Assembly (NCBI GenBank): GCA_964247055.1
Contig: OZ176055.1
Coordinates: forward strand, 9,672,001 to 9,736,000
Reading direction: 5' to 3'
Length of the DNA: 64,000 nt
From: Paragordius varius
Lineage: Eukaryota > Animalia > Nematomorpha
Position numbers and translations under genes: made by a program. Shown here piece after piece: positions 48 to 36,350 of the stretch. Below the pieces are notes generated by a model, which was given only the letters and a program-made list of their open reading frames with translations, had not been told where the DNA came from and did no database searches. How positions within the stretch are numbered: position 1 is the stretch's first letter; every line of letters starts with the position of its first letter.

Positions 48-1777
48 TTTGAATCAACTTGGAAATAAAATTCTTTATCGATCATCGGTTTCTCGTGGCA
101 AGTGTTATTGAAGTGACATATAAAGTTTTGAACAAAATTGAATAGTCCACTTGATAAGAGGGCTTTGCTATCAAAATGACCTAAGCATTAAAAAACGCAA
201 AATTATAATCCTTCTCTAAAATAAAAACTGATATGGGCAGCTGAAACTCAATGAAAAAAAGATACGCCGGTATATTAAATTTAAATTTAAATCTTTAGTT
301 TTATTTTACAAATTTTTATAAAAATAACAGCTGTTTACTTTTAGGATTATTCTCCATCTGGCAATTTTGAATGTAAATATTCAAATTTTTTGAAAAAATT
401 AAAATTAAGATTCTCATCAACATTTTTCCGCCGATTTTTTACAAAATTAATTTTCAAATAGCTAAAAATGGCATCTAATAAAATATTATGGTTGAAAAAA
501 AATTAATTATATTTCAATAAATTCCCAACTATCAATATTAATCAGCTGTTTTTTAAAACAGATATGAGTGCTATTTAGATTTTGGACTTTAGAACAAAAT
601 TGCATGAGTTTATAATTAAATACCGATAATATTTTTTACCACTAGATATCATCCAATGTAATCTTTTTTAACTAAACTCTTACCTTTTTTTTATAAATTT
701 GAACCATTTTGATAAAATAAATATAATTTTTTGGCTCAATTGATAAGGCTCAGGTTCTTATTAAGGCATTTATAACAAACACACTCATCTCAATAAATGT
801 GTGTCGATTTAAATACGAAAACTGAAATTATACGGACAAAACGATATAAAGACATATATTTTTTCTCAAATACAACCATACTTTTAAAATCTAGATTTAT
901 AACAATATAACTCATCAATTTAACTGACAAAGTGTGAAATAGAGATATATATATAAGACTAACACAATTATATATTTTACAATTGTAACTAAATAGCTAG
1001 CTTATATAAGAAAAATTAAGGTTTTGAAAAGTATGGTTGTCTTTTAGTAAAAAAATATTTGTCTTTAAATTTTTACGTTTTATCCGTATAATTTCAATTT
1101 TTACTGTAAGTAATATGTGATTTTCTTTAATAGGACATACATTCTGATTGCATCATTGTTAATCCCTTTTCATTGCTTAAACGGATAAGGACAATAATGA
1201 ACACAAGAAAAAGCGGCCATAGAATATCAAAAAGTAGTCTAATCTATAAAAAATGTAAATTATTTTTTAATGTTAAATTAAATTAAATAATATTATCAAT
1301 TTATCCTAAATATGATAGAAACCTGTAAAATAAGGTAATATAAGATATTATTTAGTATTTATTTTTTAAAATTAAATCGACACAGTTTAGAGATTGTTTT
1401 TTTGTCTGGCCTAACCGTTGGTTATCTTTTTTTTCTTTTTTATTAAATCTAATTTAAATTCGACTTGTTGATCAAAGGTCAAACAAAATTAAGGACAAAA
1501 TGTGACTTTTAACAGTATGAGGCGTGATTTACACCGTTTTTTAAAAAGTGGGATGGATCCCTTTGGCTATTGAATGTTTAAAGAAAGGAAATCGTTAATT
1601 TGCCATCAGTAGATGAAAAAATAATCTCCAACATGTTTGATATTTAAAATATGTTGAATCTCTTTGATATAATCTCAAAAGCACATAAAAGAATATTTAG
1701 TATAATACCTTGTTTTTTTGGACCATTTTCATGTGTTTCCACATGAGCAGTAAGAATTGGTGAAGTTTTACGTTCAT
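48..1777 (-). CDS. ABCA: ABC transporter subfamily A, first three coding exons (gene continues beyond the left edge)
   Basis: Exons 1777-1709, 1243-1141 and 180-48, all GT-AG with matching phases, splice to MNVKLHQFLLLMWKHMKMVQKNK-IRLLFDILWPLFLVFIIVLIRLSNEKGLTMMQSE-CHFDSKALLSSGLFNFVQNFICHFNNTCHEKP. This matches the ABCA1/4/7-type N-terminus (QLxLLLWKN, first TM with WP, CHFxxKAxxSxG...C...N.C). The donor at 47 is less certain. Not in the ORF track because the exons are short. Confidence 0.88.
816..1106. mobile_element. MITE family A copy in ABCA intron 2
   Basis: Same TIR core (TACGGACAAAACG...GACAACCATAC and its inverse), ending TTTTACTG|TA. Confidence 0.8.
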
Positions 1778-27817: not shown

Positions 27818-30800
27818 TTACTTTTTGTTTTTCCGCTTTTCTCGTCATTTTCTTGGATTTGTTTTTAATCACGTTCGTCTCCCTAAAATTATGATATAAT
27901 AGGTACCAATTATAATATTATGGAAATATATGAGAAATTTAGCATGTTAAAAATAAAAAATGTAAGGATGTCAACCACATTTCTATATCATTCTTAATAA
28001 AAATAGAGAAATAAATTATTATAGGAAATAAACAACCCTAATTCGATCGGCTATGTCGCAAAAGATTGGTTAACTTTATAAAAATGACAATAAAATACAT
28101 AAACTATAGATATAAATTTAACCGGAATCGCGACATTTTTTGAGAAATATAAAAAATTTTAGACTTATTATTCCAATGTATTAAAAATTTCAAACCATAC
28201 TTTTTAATTTGCGCCTGTTTGATATCAAGGAGTTCACGTTTAGCCTTAAACAATGTTTTAGGAATGTGTCGATGCCTATAAATTCTAGCGATTTCTGGAT
28301 GGTTGACATATTTTTCTTTCAATTTGGCATTGTAATTGAACGCATTCCGTTCTCGCGTTTTAACCTATGATTATTTTATAGCAAAAAATAATTGAATTGA
28401 AATTTTTAATAGGGTTTATATCTGTAACATAGGATTAAATTTAATTCAAAAATTAATTAACAGTAAAATTAGTTATTTGTAAAAGGATTAAAAACACACA
28501 AAAATAAAAGGTAATATATATTATGTATTTATTTAATTTTTATGCTAAAAATAACTTATGTTTCCTAAAAAGATTGCATTACTTAAATTATTAAAATTTG
28601 ATAATACAAGTCTTCAAATATCAAATCTTTACCATATTATACCAATTAAATTAGATTATAAGTTAAAAACGTTTGTCAACTAATAAAAATAATTACAAAA
28701 AAATTACAAAAAAACTAAAAATTATATACGATTCCAATCTTTTCCCATGCTCTGGCCTTCCAAATCCTGATATTGGTTTCATCCGAACCGGAATAAATGT
28801 ATTTGTTATCGGCTGACCATTTGACACAAAAAATGCGTTGCATACGTTGAGTGTAATACACCTCTCTTTTGTTAATGTTCGTAAAAAAAATATAAAGAAA
28901 AATATATTTTACAGTAAATAATGGAAAAATATAGAATTCAATACCCGAATCACAAATCTTTTTTTTTTCAAAAAGAACAAATTTTTTTAACTTTTGTCAT
29001 TACCATATTATACAGTAAAAACTGAAATCAAGTAAAAATATAAAGACAAATATTTTTTTTCTTAAAGACAACCATACTTTTTTAATTTCAATTTTTCTCA
29101 TATAATTCATTTATTTACAATTAAAAATATATAATTGATTGTGTTACCAATATAAATATATATATATTATACTTTGTTGTTTAAAACATATATAATTAAG
29201 ATTAAAAAAGCATGGTTGTCTTTTAAAAAAAAATATTTGTCTTTATATTTTTACGTTTTGTCCGTATAATTTCAAGTTTTACTGTAAATAATTTCACTAG
29301 TATTCGGAAAGATTAAAACAAAAATATTATTAGTGGTTTCCTTATATGTCTTAAAAGTGTATTCGTAGAAAAATATAAATAATTTAAAACAACTTTATCT
29401 TAAAACCCTAAAAGTTATTCTGCAATTAAAAAGTTTATCGTAAAAACTCAGCATCACATATGTCAAATTTTAAGGCTCATTTTTCAAAACTATGAGAAAA
29501 AATTTTATATTTCTTTAGAAAATGTTGAAATAGGGATGCAAAGACCGACTCCCACCTCCTCGCGGGGCATCCCGGGTAACGCTAACGGGAGCGGCACTGT
29601 TTGTAAAGAACAGTCAATGAACATCAATCCAGAAGGAGGAAAACTAGTGTGTGGGGCGTGGCGGAATTGAGATTGGCTGTCTCATTTTCTTACAAAATAC
29701 CACAATGCCTGTATTCACACACATGGTTTTAAAGCGGGTTTATCTGGGCGCTATAACCAGCAGCCAGATGATAATAACGATAATATAAGTACTTATAACG
29801 AAAGATGGAGTGGGAGCTTCCAAAGCCCAGAAAGGCACCTCCCTCGGCCGTAGACTTAAATCTACAAACGGATTGAGAGATTCGAAGTCTTTTCAGACAC
29901 TCTCTAGCCTGGTACAGCGAATAAGGTACTCTCTCCTCCGAGTTAAGAGGTTGGCTATAAGGGCATATAGTCTATAAAAATCAAGCCTCATTACTTTTAC
30001 CATGTTCAACAGCGAAATAATAATGAAAAAATACTACGAAACTTTATATTATATATTTTTATACTGCATAATAATAATAATTATATTTATAATACATCTA
30101 CGGAAAAGTGAAATGTTACCTGAGAAAAAATCATTTAATATTAAAAATAATAACTTTAAATTTGGCACATGGAATGTCGGAACTCTTGTTGGAAAAGCTT
30201 GGATGATAATAAGTGCGATTAAAGAACAAAAGCTTGACATATGTTGTTTACAAGAAACTCGTTTTAAAAACGGAGGTAATTATCAACATGAAGGTTTTAC
30301 ACTGTATTATGAAGGAGGAAAATCAGGGAAATCAGGGGTAGCAATAGCCATAAACGATCAGATAAGAGATAATATAATTGACATTACACGTCACAACGAC
30401 AGAATTATTCAAATGCGAGTGGCTCTCAATAATACCACCCTTAACATACTATCCATCTATACCCCTCAACAGGGTCAAAATGAAACTACCAAACAGGAAT
30501 TTTGGAATCAGCTTTATCAGATCGCACAAAATGTTCCCACAAATGACATACTTTTGATCGGCGGGGATTTTAATGGACACATTGGAATGCACGCTGATGG
30601 TTATGAAGGTATACACGGTGGAGTAGGTATTGGCTCTCGCAACAAAGAAGGCGAAACCCTCTTGGAATTCTGCAGTGCCGCAAACTTATTGATTTGCAAC
30701 ACACACTTCTGTAAAAAACCTAGCCAAATCCACACATATAAAAGCGGAAATCACACATCGCAAATAGATTTTGTGTTGCTGAACCAACAACTTAGAAAAA

Positions 30801-33800
30801 TTATAACCAACTTTAAAACTTATGAATATGATACACAACATAAACTAATAGTTGCTTTTTTAATAATAAATAAGAACCGACCTAGCCCTAAAAAATTGCC
30901 ACAACTTAACGTTTCAAAACTTAATGATCCTAAAACAAAGCATCAATACATCAACCAAATTACACCTGAACTAAAACATTCCCCTAACAACGTTCATGAC
31001 GGCTGGGAGCATCTCAAAAACACCCTTCTCTCAAACGTTTCCAAAATCTGCGGAAGAAAACGTACCAAAACAAAATCTCAATGGTGGTGGCAAAGCGATA
31101 TTAAACCCTTATTGAATGAGAAAAGAGATGCCTTTAAGAAATGGAAAGCTTCTAAACATGATGATGACAAACATTTTTACATAATGGTTAAAAAAAGAGT
31201 AAAGAAAATAATAGCTGACAAAATGAATGAAAGATGTTTGGAAATGGCCAAAAAACTTGAGGGAGAAATTAAAAACTTAAAAGTTTTTAAAACACTAAAA
31301 AATATTAATAATAATAAAAAAGATATTCGGGTAGTGAAGGCCATAAAAGATAAAAATAACAACACAGTTACTGACACTCTTAGCATTCAAAATGTATGGA
31401 CACAATACATGCAAAATACACTGAATTTCCAGCATTCAAATGTCGAGATCCCAAACTTACCTCCAGTTATTGGGCCACCCCCAATTATTACTGCAGAAGA
31501 TGTGAGCTTAGCCATGCAAAAATGTAAAATCAATAAGGCATCTGGTCCAACGGAAATTAAAACTGAAATGTACAAAAATATTCCTGAAGCAATTACCTAT
31601 TTCACAGAGCTATTTAATCTGATTATAATGGAGGAAAAAATCCCGAACGACTGGAACCAAAGTGTCATAATTCCAATATATAAAAACAAAGGCGACATGC
31701 TCAACTGCGCCTCCTACAGACCATTAAAATTACTTGAACACGCAACCAAATTATTCGAAATAATTATAGAAAAGAAAATACGTCAGCTTTGCTCGATTGA
31801 CGAAAACCAATTCGATTTCCAACAGGGGATCAGCACCTCTGACGCCATATTCATTCTTAGAAGGCTACAAGAGAACTACAGATGCAAAAACAAAACCCTA
31901 TATCACATCTTTATTGATTTAAGCCGTGCATTCGACTGCATCCCGCGGTCCATGATCACATTTGCGTTACGAAAAAAAGAAATTTCGGAATGGATAATAA
32001 GAATAATAAACTTACTATATGAGAACACCACTAGTTGTGTGAGAACTCCCGTGGGTGATACCAATCAATTTCCAGTAACTGTCGGACTACACCAGGGCTC
32101 CATCCTGAGTCCATTACTATTTATCATCATTATGGATGTAATAACTGATAATATAAAAACAGGTTTACCTTTTGAGATGATGTACGCTGACGACATAATA
32201 CTAACAGCCACCAGCGAAACAGACATTATCAATAAATATAACCTCTGGAAATCTACTTTAGAAAAATTTGGCCTCAAAATTAACACAGATAAAACAAAGG
32301 CTTTAATAACAGGCTCACCGGTACCTGTAATAAAATTCCCTTGCTCCATTTGTCGCTCTGAAGTGAAACTTAATTCCATCAAATGCACTAAATGCCAGCT
32401 GTGGGTCCATAAAAAGTGCTTACAAATTAAAGGAAGTTTATTGGGAATTGAAAATTTTATATGTAAAGCTTGTGCAACACCAGATATAAACCCAAATAAT
32501 CCCACACAAACCACCTACCTTCCAACTACAAACATCGAAATAGTAAACAAGTACAATTACCTGGGTGACACAATAGCAGCTGATATGAATATTAAAAACG
32601 CCATAACAACACGGTCACATCAGGCTTGGGCCAAATTTTATCAACTCAAGTATATAATGAAACACAAACACATTTCAAACCCAAACAAGGGCAAAATCTA
32701 CACGATTGCCATTCGCCCTGCCCTCACCTATGCTAGCGAATGTTGGCCCTTAAACCAAACTAATGAAAATAAATTATGTGACATAGAAAGAAAAATCCTC
32801 AACTCATGCCTCACCAATCAGTATCACAATGATAAAACAAATAATAATAAAAGCATACATAATCTATTTCATATCGCACCTATGTCTTCTTTTCTCAGAG
32901 CAAATCGTCTCAGATACTGGGGTCACATTGAACGCTCAAATAGTTGGATTAACAAAATTAGATCCTTTCATCCGAACGGCAATTTAAAACGAGGCAGACC
33001 ATACCATGATTGGGAAAAAACACTCAGCAATGACTTACACTTAACTCAACTGAACAAAGACGATTGTCTCGATCGCAAGCTATTTCGCTCAAGAATTTGG
33101 AAGCTAGCACATGCTGGACAAACAACGACTTGATGATGATTGATGATGATGAGAAAATGTTGAAATAATTCTAACCAATAAGGTTATTACCTACTCCGGC
33201 CCTTGGCAACCTCAAAAATACGCAGCGTTTTATCAAAACTGCCAGTTACAAATTCCGTTCCACACGGGGAATAATCAATGTCCAGCACGGCGCCTGTATG
33301 GTCAGCATGAATAAACTTTGGTCGATTCATAAACCGAGTATCAAACGTGTAAGCATTGTAATCTTCATTGGCAAGCGTTAACGTATAACTTTCTACCGGG
33401 TTCCAAGCCAGCGCATTAGTTCGCATTTTAAGTGTTAACTAGGAATTAGGAATTATTATTCAAGCAGAGTAAAAATTAATTCACCCTTGAACAATTCAAA
33501 TTCTCCCTTGAACAATTTAAATGCACCCTTGAACAATTCAAATTCAGCCTTGAACAATTCAAATTCAGCCTTGAACAATTCAAGTTCACCCTTGAACAAT
33601 TTAAATTCACCCATGAACAATTCACCCATGAACAATTCACCCATGAACAATTCACCCTTGAACGATTCAAATTCACCCATGAACAATTCACCCTTGAACG
33701 ATTTAAATTCACCCATGAACAATTCACATTCTCCCTTTCAAATTTACCCATAAATTCACCCTTGAACAATTATGAACAATTCACATTCTCCCTACAATAT

Positions 33801-36350
33801 AAATTCACCCTTGAACAATTCAACATGAACAATTCACATTCTCCCTTAAACAATATAAATTGACCCTTGAACAATTAAAAATTACCCTTAAATTCACCCT
33901 TTACAATTTAATTTCACCCTCGAACATTCATAATACCCTTAAACATTTCAAAATCACCCTTGAACAATTCAAATTTACCCTTGAACAATTCAAATTTACC
34001 CTCAAATTCACCTTTGAATTTGAACATCAAATTTACCCTTGAACAATTCAAATTCACCCTTAAACAATTTAAATTCATCCTCGAACAATTCCAATTCACC
34101 CTTGAACAATTCAAGTTCACCCTTTAACAATTCAAATTCACCCACGGAACAATTTAAATTTACCCTTGATTCGATTCACACTCGAACAACTCAAATTCAC
34201 ACTCAACAACTCAAATTTACCCTTGAACAATTCAAATTCACCCTCTAATAATTCAAATTCACCCTAAAAATACATTGTTGTGTTCGGACTAATATAACTA
34301 ATCAACCATCTGTAATATATCATATGGCATAGTTTATTATTTTTTTTAGTATTATTTTAATTTTAAACAAAATTTCATTTTGGTAAAAATATAAAAAATA
34401 TAGGTAAATTTTAATCCTAAAAAACCCATAATTTATTTTAAGGGTGAATTTGATTTGTAAATGGTATATAAAGAAAAAAGTATAGTATTTTAAAGGAAAT
34501 ATTATTTCTTTTTTTATAAGTATTATAGAATTCACTGTGATTCGTATTTTGCAGCCCAAATTTAGAAGAAGACTCAAAATTTTTGTGGTCCTTTTTGTTT
34601 CAAACTATTTAAAACTAAAATGAAATATTGGAGAAAATAAAAGTACAATAAATGTATTAAATGGTATTATTTCGTAATAAAATTTATACAACTATAAAGA
34701 ATTTTGGATATTACTAAATAAAATGCATAAAAAGTAAAAAAAAGTTTGTTTTACCCTTTTTTTAAAAGCTGGATTATTATCGTTTGTAAAATATATAATT
34801 AAAGATTTTATCAATTAAATTCATCCTCCTTTGCAACTTGGTTAAAAATATGATTTTCTTTATAAAAAATATTAGACTTTTAGTTTTAAATTTTGCCTTC
34901 ATAATTTCTTCAATTTTTAAAGTAAAAATAAAAATATGCAAATATAAAACTTACTTTTCTAATATGTGTAGGTTTTCGAATATCATAAAGTGCTACACTA
35001 CGGTCTGAGGCGGCCGATGCCAATATATCGTGCTAAAAATAATAATAAATTAATCTAAACTAACAAAAATCAATCCATTAAAATTTTTTATTGATTTTCC
35101 TAACACTTTCGTAAAATTTTAAATAAATTATTGGTTTTTTTTGATATGTCAATCTTACTTTCTGTTAAATAAAAACATTTTTTGCCTATTTTCTTGGATA
35201 TATAATAATAACAAGAATAACTTCAATTGGGTTAAATTTTATGGCGTTTGAGGTTTCGTTCGTTGAGAAATAAGATTTGATAGGTTCAGATCGATTCAAA
35301 TCCCACAAATTTATTTCATGTCCTGAGGTGGCGTATAAACCTTCACTGAAATGATGATCACATCCATGGATCATGCTCTATAAAACAGAACAGAAATATA
35401 AAATTAAAATTATAATAAGGACAACTCATAAAAAGAAAAAGATTTTTTTCGATAAAAGAAACCAAATTTTAATCATAATATTTATATATACAACCTATAT
35501 AATATTCTATAAATGAATTTAGAAGTATAAAAAAAACATTGGAAGGAACCGTCAATTATGAAATCGAGTGTGGATAATTAATTTAAATTTCCATTTATAG
35601 TTTTCACAATTTAAACGGATAAAGTTTTAAAAAATATATCTCTTTAGAAAAAATTTAATACTAAATCAAAATAAATTTTAATATTATAGCGGTATAGCTT
35701 TAAAGATAAATCCGTCATAATTAAATTTATATTTATTAAAGTTTTAACTACATTAGAAATATATTTTAATTTTTATGTTAAATCTAAAAATTTTTATTTT
35801 GGTTGTATATTAAATTTTAACGTAAATTATAGTGTTGGGACATAAATTAAAATAAACCTCATAAACAATTATATTGTGAGGTTTAAGATCTTTAACGTCA
35901 GCTAAACTTTGCATACTCCAAAACTTGATGGTTTTATCATCGCCACAGGAAATAAAATAGTTTGCAGATTGAGGTAAGGTAATACACCTTACAAAACCAT
36001 TATGAGCTTGGAGGGTTTGAAAAGAATCTTTGGTGTTAAGATTCCAAATACGAATTTCACCATCACATGATCCACTTAAGAACCAGGAAAGAACTGAGTG
36101 ATGACGATTCAAGCAGAAAACGCCATCACGATGACCGGAAAGTACACCTACTAAAGGTTTAGCAAAAACGCGTTCAAGTTTGATTGCATTTAGAGCTTGC
36201 GTATATTCACGTTCAGCTTCAAACGGGTGCAAATATTTGTCATAATTTCGGAAAACTTTATAAATTTAAAAAAAATATACTTTTATTAATATCCTTTTTC
36301 GTTTCACGAAGATAAACGTCAGGATTTCTGGACAAAACTTTAATTTTCAT
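27818..36350 (-). CDS. DCAF13: DDB1- and CUL4-associated factor 13 / SOF1 (WD40 U3 snoRNP protein), 8 exons
   Basis: Exons 36350-36281, 36255-35858, 35377-35222, 35032-34955, 33438-33191, 28865-28730, 28364-28201 and 27882-27818. MKIKVLSRNPDVYLRETK, LHPFEAEREYTQALNAIKLERVFAKP, MRTNALAWNP, GTEFVTGSFDKTLRIF, SGSDETNIRIWKARA and RIYRHRHIPK are characteristic of SOF1/DCAF13. Confidence 0.95.
29013..29284. mobile_element. MITE family A (Tc1/mariner-type, TA|CAGTAAAA...TTTTACTG|TA), best-preserved copy
   Basis: Imperfect TIRs of about 80 bp (CAGTAAAAATTGAAATTATACGGACAAAACGTAAAAATATAAAGACAAAT...AAAGACAACCATACTTTTT), TA flanks, 272 bp in total. Confidence 0.85.
29533..29594 (+). ncRNA. HDV-like self-cleaving ribozyme (predicted) at the LINE 5' end
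   Basis: P1 GGGAUGC (29533-39)/GCAUCCC (29567-73); P2 CCG-A-CUCCC (29545-53)/GGGAGCGG (29587-94); P3 ACC/GGG with one A-G mismatch; L3 UCCUCGC; P1.1 CC (29558-59)/GG (29574-75); J4/2 GCUAA with putative catalytic C29582. L3 and J4/2 are identical to those of the antigenomic HDV ribozyme. Confidence 0.85.
30002..33133 (+). CDS. LINE ORF: APE-type endonuclease + reverse transcriptase + PHD-like finger (1043 aa)
   Basis: Endonuclease motifs FGTWNV, ICCLQET, GVAI, IGGDFNGH and SQIDFVL. RT motifs IPIYKNKGD, YRPLKLL, FIDLSRAFD, GLHQGSILSPLLF, MYADDI and YNYLG. C4HC3 finger at 32342-32473. No stops or frameshifts. Alternative start at 30113. Confidence 0.96.
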   Translation: MFNSEIIMKKYYETLYYIFLYCIIIIIIFIIHLRKSEMLPEKKSFNIKNNNFKFGTWNVGTLVGKAWMIISAIKEQKLDICCLQETRFKNGGNYQHEGFTLYYEGGKSGKSGVAIAINDQIRDNIIDITRHNDRIIQMRVALNNTTLNILSIYTPQQGQNETTKQEFWNQLYQIAQNVPTNDILLIGGDFNGHIGMHADGYEGIHGGVGIGSRNKEGETLLEFCSAANLLICNTHFCKKPSQIHTYKSGNHTSQIDFVLLNQQLRKIITNFKTYEYDTQHKLIVAFLIINKNRPSPKKLPQLNVSKLNDPKTKHQYINQITPELKHSPNNVHDGWEHLKNTLLSNVSKICGRKRTKTKSQWWWQSDIKPLLNEKRDAFKKWKASKHDDDKHFYIMVKKRVKKIIADKMNERCLEMAKKLEGEIKNLKVFKTLKNINNNKKDIRVVKAIKDKNNNTVTDTLSIQNVWTQYMQNTLNFQHSNVEIPNLPPVIGPPPIITAEDVSLAMQKCKINKASGPTEIKTEMYKNIPEAITYFTELFNLIIMEEKIPNDWNQSVIIPIYKNKGDMLNCASYRPLKLLEHATKLFEIIIEKKIRQLCSIDENQFDFQQGISTSDAIFILRRLQENYRCKNKTLYHIFIDLSRAFDCIPRSMITFALRKKEISEWIIRIINLLYENTTSCVRTPVGDTNQFPVTVGLHQGSILSPLLFIIIMDVITDNIKTGLPFEMMYADDIILTATSETDIINKYNLWKSTLEKFGLKINTDKTKALITGSPVPVIKFPCSICRSEVKLNSIKCTKCQLWVHKKCLQIKGSLLGIENFICKACATPDINPNNPTQTTYLPTTNIEIVNKYNYLGDTIAADMNIKNAITTRSHQAWAKFYQLKYIMKHKHISNPNKGKIYTIAIRPALTYASECWPLNQTNENKLCDIERKILNSCLTNQYHNDKTNNNKSIHNLFHIAPMSSFLRANRLRYWGHIERSNSWINKIRSFHPNGNLKRGRPYHDWEKTLSNDLHLTQLNKDDCLDRKLFRSRIWKLAHAGQTTT
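33478..34464. repeat. Family B element with a greatly expanded left arm: about 790-bp minisatellite of 21/15-bp units, in DCAF13 intron 4
   Basis: Tandem CACCCTTGAACAATTCAAATT and CATGAACAATTCACC variants at 33478-34265, followed by the family B core and the right terminus AAATGG|TA at 34464. Confidence 0.9.

Follow-up and report, generated by a model that had tools for sequence, protein, structure and literature searches.

The window, by which we mean the whole 64,000-nucleotide stretch of DNA analysed here, carries on its plus strand a LINE of 3,619 bp (29533-33151). The element is flanked by a perfectly matching 16-bp target-site duplication (TSD), AGAAAATGTTGAAATA. Its 5' copy (29517-29532) ends immediately before G29533, the first base of the LINE, just where the original prediction had placed the junction, and its 3' copy occupies 33152-33167. 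The 5' UTR is 469 nt long; the predicted ribozyme takes up its first 62 nt (29533-29594), and the remainder (29595-30001) includes a conserved hairpin at about 29648-29723. A single intact open reading frame (ORF) of 1,043 aa follows at 30002-33133, and a short TGA-rich 3' tail (33134-33151) closes the element. By Pfam, the ORF encodes an AP endonuclease (aa 55-264) and a reverse transcriptase (RT; aa 564-769). Directly after the RT comes a PHD-like zinc finger (aa 781-824, window 32342-32473), which scores 24.6 bits against a Pfam cutoff of 24 and whose family is also listed for many of the metagenomic relatives. The best protein relatives lie on unnamed metagenome contigs of 3.2-4 kb, with ~35% identity and the same domain set; the few named ones are plant reverse-transcriptase and 'craniofacial development protein'-type entries. 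A single ORF of ~1,000 aa with an N-terminal AP endonuclease and an RT, short UTRs, a 3' tail of short repeats and a TSD are all traits of the RTE clade, and from these traits, rather than from a tree against reference clades, we infer that the LINE is RTE-like.

Judged by the matching base changes in sister families, 29533-29594 very probably adopts a genuine HDV-like double-pseudoknot fold. P1 joins GGGAUGC (29533-29539) to GCAUCCC (29567-29573), with 7 of 7 positions paired and cleavage predicted 5' of G29533. Five nucleotides of J1/2, AAAGA (29540-29544), lead into P2, where CCGACUCCC (29545-29553) and GGGAGCGG (29587-29594) form 8 bp around a bulged A29548. P3 sets ACC (29554-29556) against GGG (29564-29566), giving two C-G pairs and an A29554·G29566 mismatch; most sister families have U at the position of G29566. 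The loop L3, UCCUCGC (29557-29563), provides C29558 and C29559, which form the 2-bp P1.1 with G29575 and G29574 (the GG at 29574-29575). The fold is completed by GUAACG (29576-29581), 6 nt that stand in place of P4, and by J4/2, CUAAC (29582-29586), which puts C29582 at the catalytic position. On direct reading of the sequence, this 62-nt fold and all its coordinates, including C29582 and G29566, are as originally predicted. The one-pair P4 that had been drawn at G29576-UAA-C29580 did not hold up. Sister families do not conserve this pair, family B having U-UAA-U instead, so that positions 29576-29581 are more aptly described as a 6-nt linker in a ribozyme that has no P4.

HDV-like ribozymes are defined by a nested double pseudoknot (PMC4908430) and by an L3 that supplies two C for P1.1 and both the U and the G of a trans GU pair (PMC3386971), while a P4 helix is common among them but dispensable (PMC3774820, PMC10879173). 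On 29533-29594 four helices can be drawn in this nested arrangement, with P1 and P1.1 stacked and P2 on P3. The first base of P1 is a G paired with C (G29533-C29573), and in the sister families it pairs as G-C (five) or G·U (four). The first base of J4/2 is a cytosine, C29582, that is invariant in eight families, as are U29557, C29558, C29559 and G29562 of L3. A P4 helix is absent, with 6 nt between P1.1 and C29582, which does not disqualify the fold. A 44-aa ORF (29536-29670) opens at an AUG made of ribozyme bases 4-6; family B has GUG there, and the ORF is not conserved.

At gathering scores, an Rfam search of the window returned no match. In a local below-threshold search, RF02682 reached 26.3 bits (E 0.0053; gathering score 44) and RF01787 15.7 bits (gathering score 37), both starting at 29533, and RF00094 reached 24.8 bits from 29531 (gathering score 50), with about 30 model positions of its P4 region matched by a single base. 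In the covariance-model check suggested with the original prediction, three HDV-type models thus start at 29533 or 29531, and all of them stay below gathering. A loose descriptor of our own found one match in the window, at 29533, where 0.25 are expected per simulated 64 kb, and the HDV-like fold is by itself only modestly unusual. What takes it far beyond chance is that it starts on the exact first base of a LINE and that its pairs covary. Nested minimum-free-energy folding of 64 nt, a method blind to pseudoknots, gave a result no better than shuffles (z 0.53).

If a ribozyme sets where the copied RNA has its 5' end, then independent insertions should all begin at the same base. We searched the genome, 110.5 Mb in size, for the family of the window LINE, hereafter family A, and many copies are present. 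Eight loci, which amount to seven insertions since L007 overlaps L019, show no difference in their first 64 nt, and unrelated flanks precede the first base, G1. Six independent insertions have TSDs of 13-16 bp that end 0 nt before G1, which bears out the prediction that the RNA copied into them began at G1. The same is seen beyond family A: in each of families A, B, C, D and F, all full-length copies start at the same base after unrelated upstream flanks. Over 3.6 kb, seven other full-length family-A copies share 97.3-98.8% identity with the one in the window, and ORFs of at least 1,003 aa persist in five of the seven, besides the intact 1,043-aa ORF in the window. Family A is thus young, so that neither its A·G mismatch nor its lack of P4 is at odds with recent retrotransposition.

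At three loci the 5' junction is more complicated. L022 (~1565-1600, minus strand), L062 and L059 carry a 5' fragment of the ribozyme, roughly from J1/2 to L3, ahead of G1; the duplicated fragment ends in ...ACCUCC at L022 and L062 and stops inside the P2 strand at L059. These fragments look like partial tandem duplications, and may be template jumps or nested insertions.

A covariance model built from the first matches gave at least 118 matches in the genome, in several LINE families and with the fold at the first base. At least seven LINE families other than A carry an HDV-like fold in this position, and they differ in what lies between P1.1 and J4/2. Families B (L031; ~45-50% protein identity to A), C (L038; ~42%) and F (L044; ~45%) have linkers of 6, 8 and 7 nt, respectively, and family A, in the window, one of 6 nt. 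P4 hairpins of 4 bp are found in family D (L053; ~43%), where the loop is GAAA, and in family H (L075; ~45%); the hairpin has 7 bp in family G (L074; ~45%) and 5 bp in family E (L033; ~22%), which lies in 28S rDNA-like sequence.

We aligned nine sequences from the eight families and found standard pairs in 98.9% of pair cells, with compensatory changes at 12 of 20 pairs. The observed covariation was reached by 0 of 500 shuffles, and sliding the partners by 1-3 columns left only 39-46% of cells paired. The compensatory changes that had been proposed as a check on other genomic 5' ends are thus present, and in all three helices: at 5 of 7 pairs in P1, on both sides of 6 of 8 pairs in P2, where the bulged base at the position of A29548 is kept in all families, and as one C-G to G-C swap in P3. 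No change is seen in the CC/GG of P1.1, in the initial U or the G of L3, or in the C-N-A-A-C of J4/2 (8 of 8 families), all of which belong to the core as described for HDV-type ribozymes (PMC4908430, PMC3386971). Taken alone, the P4-less families A, B, C and F are 99.2% paired, with five compensatory pairs. Their sole unpaired cell is family A's A·G mismatch, which is present in family E as well and therefore arose more than once. The endonucleases of families A and B are ~50% identical, and the DNA of the two matches only over the 64-nt ribozyme, at 83%. The original prediction had further stressed how closely the core, L3 included, matches that of antigenomic HDV. For L3 the match to the HDV consensus is real in family A, but a special tie to HDV does not follow, as sister families carry other variants (UCCGCGU, UCCACGU, UCCCCGU) and the family-A loop is one variant under a shared constraint.

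Family E (L033, L084; G000:C2:2270931) has nine copies on C2. Its HDV-like ribozyme, 82 nt long with the 5-bp P4, reaches 32.8 bits with RF00094, more than any other in the genome. The element starts directly after 28S-like sequence ending in ...ACCACAGGGAT and has an open frame of 1,236 aa that includes APE and RT.

The absence of P4 is probably a derived state, going by the distribution of P4 in the sequences compared, because P4 is present in families D, G, H and E and in three metagenomic relatives from outside the genome, L078 and L079 (~35% amino acid identity) and L098 (33%), all of which have HDV-like folds with P4 upstream of the ORF. Rfam returned no match at E <= 1 on L078 and L079, although our own descriptor finds folds in both. 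In three further outside relatives, L096, L097 and L099, the descriptor found no ribozyme; L096 has 30 nt before its ORF. A protein tree groups the seven RTE-like families of the genome in one clade (94/93), whose inner branches fit one or several losses of P4. A single loss is favoured by 5'-UTR blocks that occur in families A, B, C and F and are missing from D, G and H. One such block is the hairpin at ~29648-29723 (also in L031, L080 and L081), which is common only to the four P4-less families. In it, GUGUGGGGYGUGG pairs with CCACAAURCCUG..UUCACAC, and a variable apical stem covaries; 9 of its 32 predicted pairs show compensatory changes, and its distance from G1 varies between 73 and 118 nt. 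A third conserved 5'-UTR block, AAAGCGGGUUUAUCUGGGCGCUAUAACCAG at 29731-29760, is likewise common to families A, B, C and F.

Tentatively, then, one genome may hold a natural series of a single ribozyme lineage, with a P4 of 7, 5 or 4 bp in some LINE families and none in A, B, C and F, which have kept a core of 62-64 nt down to ~42-50% protein identity; in these four, the downstream hairpin might serve instead to stabilise the RNA or to aid translation. Should the ribozymes of the P4-less families prove efficient at cleavage, they would rank with the smallest HDV-like ribozymes active in a eukaryote.

Collectively, these data favour a model in which the young RTE-like LINE opens, at 29533-29594, with a compact self-cleaving ribozyme that is HDV-like and has no P4, a reading to which we give a probability of roughly 85%. 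In this model, the LINE would be transcribed from upstream DNA, by read-through or from a nearby promoter, and the nascent RNA would fold into the nested double pseudoknot, with P1 and P1.1 on one side and P2 and P3 on the other. C29582 in J4/2 would then catalyse scission between A29532 and G29533. The released RNA, starting at G1, would serve both as messenger for the endonuclease and reverse transcriptase and as template, and target-primed reverse transcription would copy it. An RNA that begins at G1 would explain why full-length insertions start at G1, directly after the TSD. That the RNA is actually cleaved, and that its 5' end is determined by this cleavage and not by where transcription starts, is what we infer from sequence comparison. 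In family A, the A·G mismatch in P3 and the absent P4 could slow or weaken cleavage.

The G1 5' ends fit transcription initiation equally well, and the conserved 64 nt might thus be mainly an internal promoter or a protein-binding 5' end, with initiation at G1 and the family-A fold a weakened, non-cleaving relic. There is precedent for a promoter in this position, as the first 77 nt of L1Tc are promoter and ribozyme both (PMC3383444), and the one unpaired cell among the P4-less families does fall in family A. However, compensatory changes keep P1, P2 and P3 paired while their sequence changes, which points to selection for structure in the RNA instead of for a motif in the DNA, and the cytosine at the catalytic position and the P1.1 bases are invariant. 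As for a relic, the same A·G occurs in family E, and family A is young, with intact ORFs. Since selection kept the base pairs and not the sequence, we consider this explanation unlikely.

Selection on RNA structure could also have kept the fold for another purpose, with cleavage secondary: it might help an uncapped RNA to begin translation, shield the 5' end or be recognised during reverse transcription. The title of Ruminski et al. 2011, as cited in PMC3774820, ties such ribozymes both to processing and to the initiation of translation, a potential part in starting the translation of retrotransposon mRNAs is raised in PMC4908430, and the conserved downstream UTR hairpin suggests further RNA functions. 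Such roles are compatible with cleavage, though, and cleavage would be expected to show just such an invariant cytosine at the catalytic position and ends exactly at G1; that cleavage is the lesser function seems to us very improbable. Mere resemblance to the HDV fold deserves mention because the loose descriptor gives 0.25 matches per random 64 kb and the Rfam scores are below gathering. Yet the sole match in the window starts on the exact first base of the LINE, more than 100 model matches occur in the genome, and covariation is strong. Chance, which we credit with next to nothing, is effectively refuted by this covariation and by the TSDs that adjoin G1.

HDV-like ribozymes at the 5' junction have been published for R2, R4, L1Tc and RTE elements (PMC3774820, PMC3185411). 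In the RTE-clade and other non-LTR systems, as far as they are described in PMC3185411 for L1Tc and in the citation of Ruminski et al. 2011 in PMC3774820, the double pseudoknot is the same and the cleavage site is the first base of the element, as is predicted for the window ribozyme. The host is also the same kind of LINE, with a single endonuclease/reverse-transcriptase ORF and a short repeat tail. The window ribozyme differs from these in having no P4, a 5-nt J1/2 and a total of 62 nt, and its host lineage differs in the PHD-like finger after the RT and in its nearest relatives, which are metagenomic and ~35% identical. With HDV ribozymes themselves (RF00094), it shares an L3, UCCUCGC, a P1.1 GG and a GCUAA-GGGA that match the consensus, but it lacks P4, has A·G in P3 and scores 24.8 bits against a gathering score of 50.

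A natural retroelement ribozyme without P4 had been put forward as notable, and on this point the original prediction is overtaken by the literature, because P4-less HDV-like ribozymes have already been published. In Bombyx mori and four more silkmoth species, the R2 ribozymes are without a P4 stem, and some R2 ribozymes have too few P4 nucleotides for a structure (PMC3774820); an abalone HDV-like ribozyme, as cited there, has 5 nt in place of P4. Like the window ribozyme, those of Bombyx mori and other Bombycoidea belong to a natural retroelement, lack P4 and conserve the catalytic C and a few core bases (PMC3774820). They differ, however, in a J1/2 of 216-498 nt, in a P1 that draws on 28S sequence and in their place within the site-specific R2 clade (PMC3774820), whereas the window ribozyme is compact and lies wholly inside its LINE, which inserts at many AT-rich sites.

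Minimal HDV-like ribozymes that lack P4 are also known from phages (PMC10879173). The gut-phage minimal HDV-like, or theta, ribozymes (Riccitelli 2014, as cited in PMC10879173) similarly have the catalytic C first in J4/2, and variants with an elongated J4/2 are active, according to the account in PMC10879173. In that same account they are nearly confined to Caudoviricetes and often process tRNAs, whereas the window ribozyme sits in a eukaryotic LINE; common descent of the two is neither shown nor implied. What is particular to the window ribozyme is its compactness (no P4, a 5-nt J1/2, 62 nt) together with its sister families with and without P4. It adds a well-supported and very compact 62-nt eukaryotic example to the LINE-processing HDV-like ribozymes, and leaves the picture of how such LINEs work unchanged. 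The sister set, with and without P4 in one genome, could be used to measure the contribution of P4 and to supply small natural self-cleaving tags.

Among the sequencing runs, none recorded as RNA contains the LINE, three that were presumed to be RNA yielded zero contigs, and the run that covers it consists of contigs, which carry no RNA ends. Run X2, whose label names a different organism (organism B), contains 71% of the sampled words of the LINE, and its contigs are 90-100% identical along the whole element; family A or near relatives occur in this second labelled sample. In the window, ~300 bp downstream of the LINE, a long degenerate tandem repeat with units like CACCCTTGAACAATTCAAATT spans 33450-33900, and similar sequence flanks other LINE copies, for example upstream of L006 and L030.
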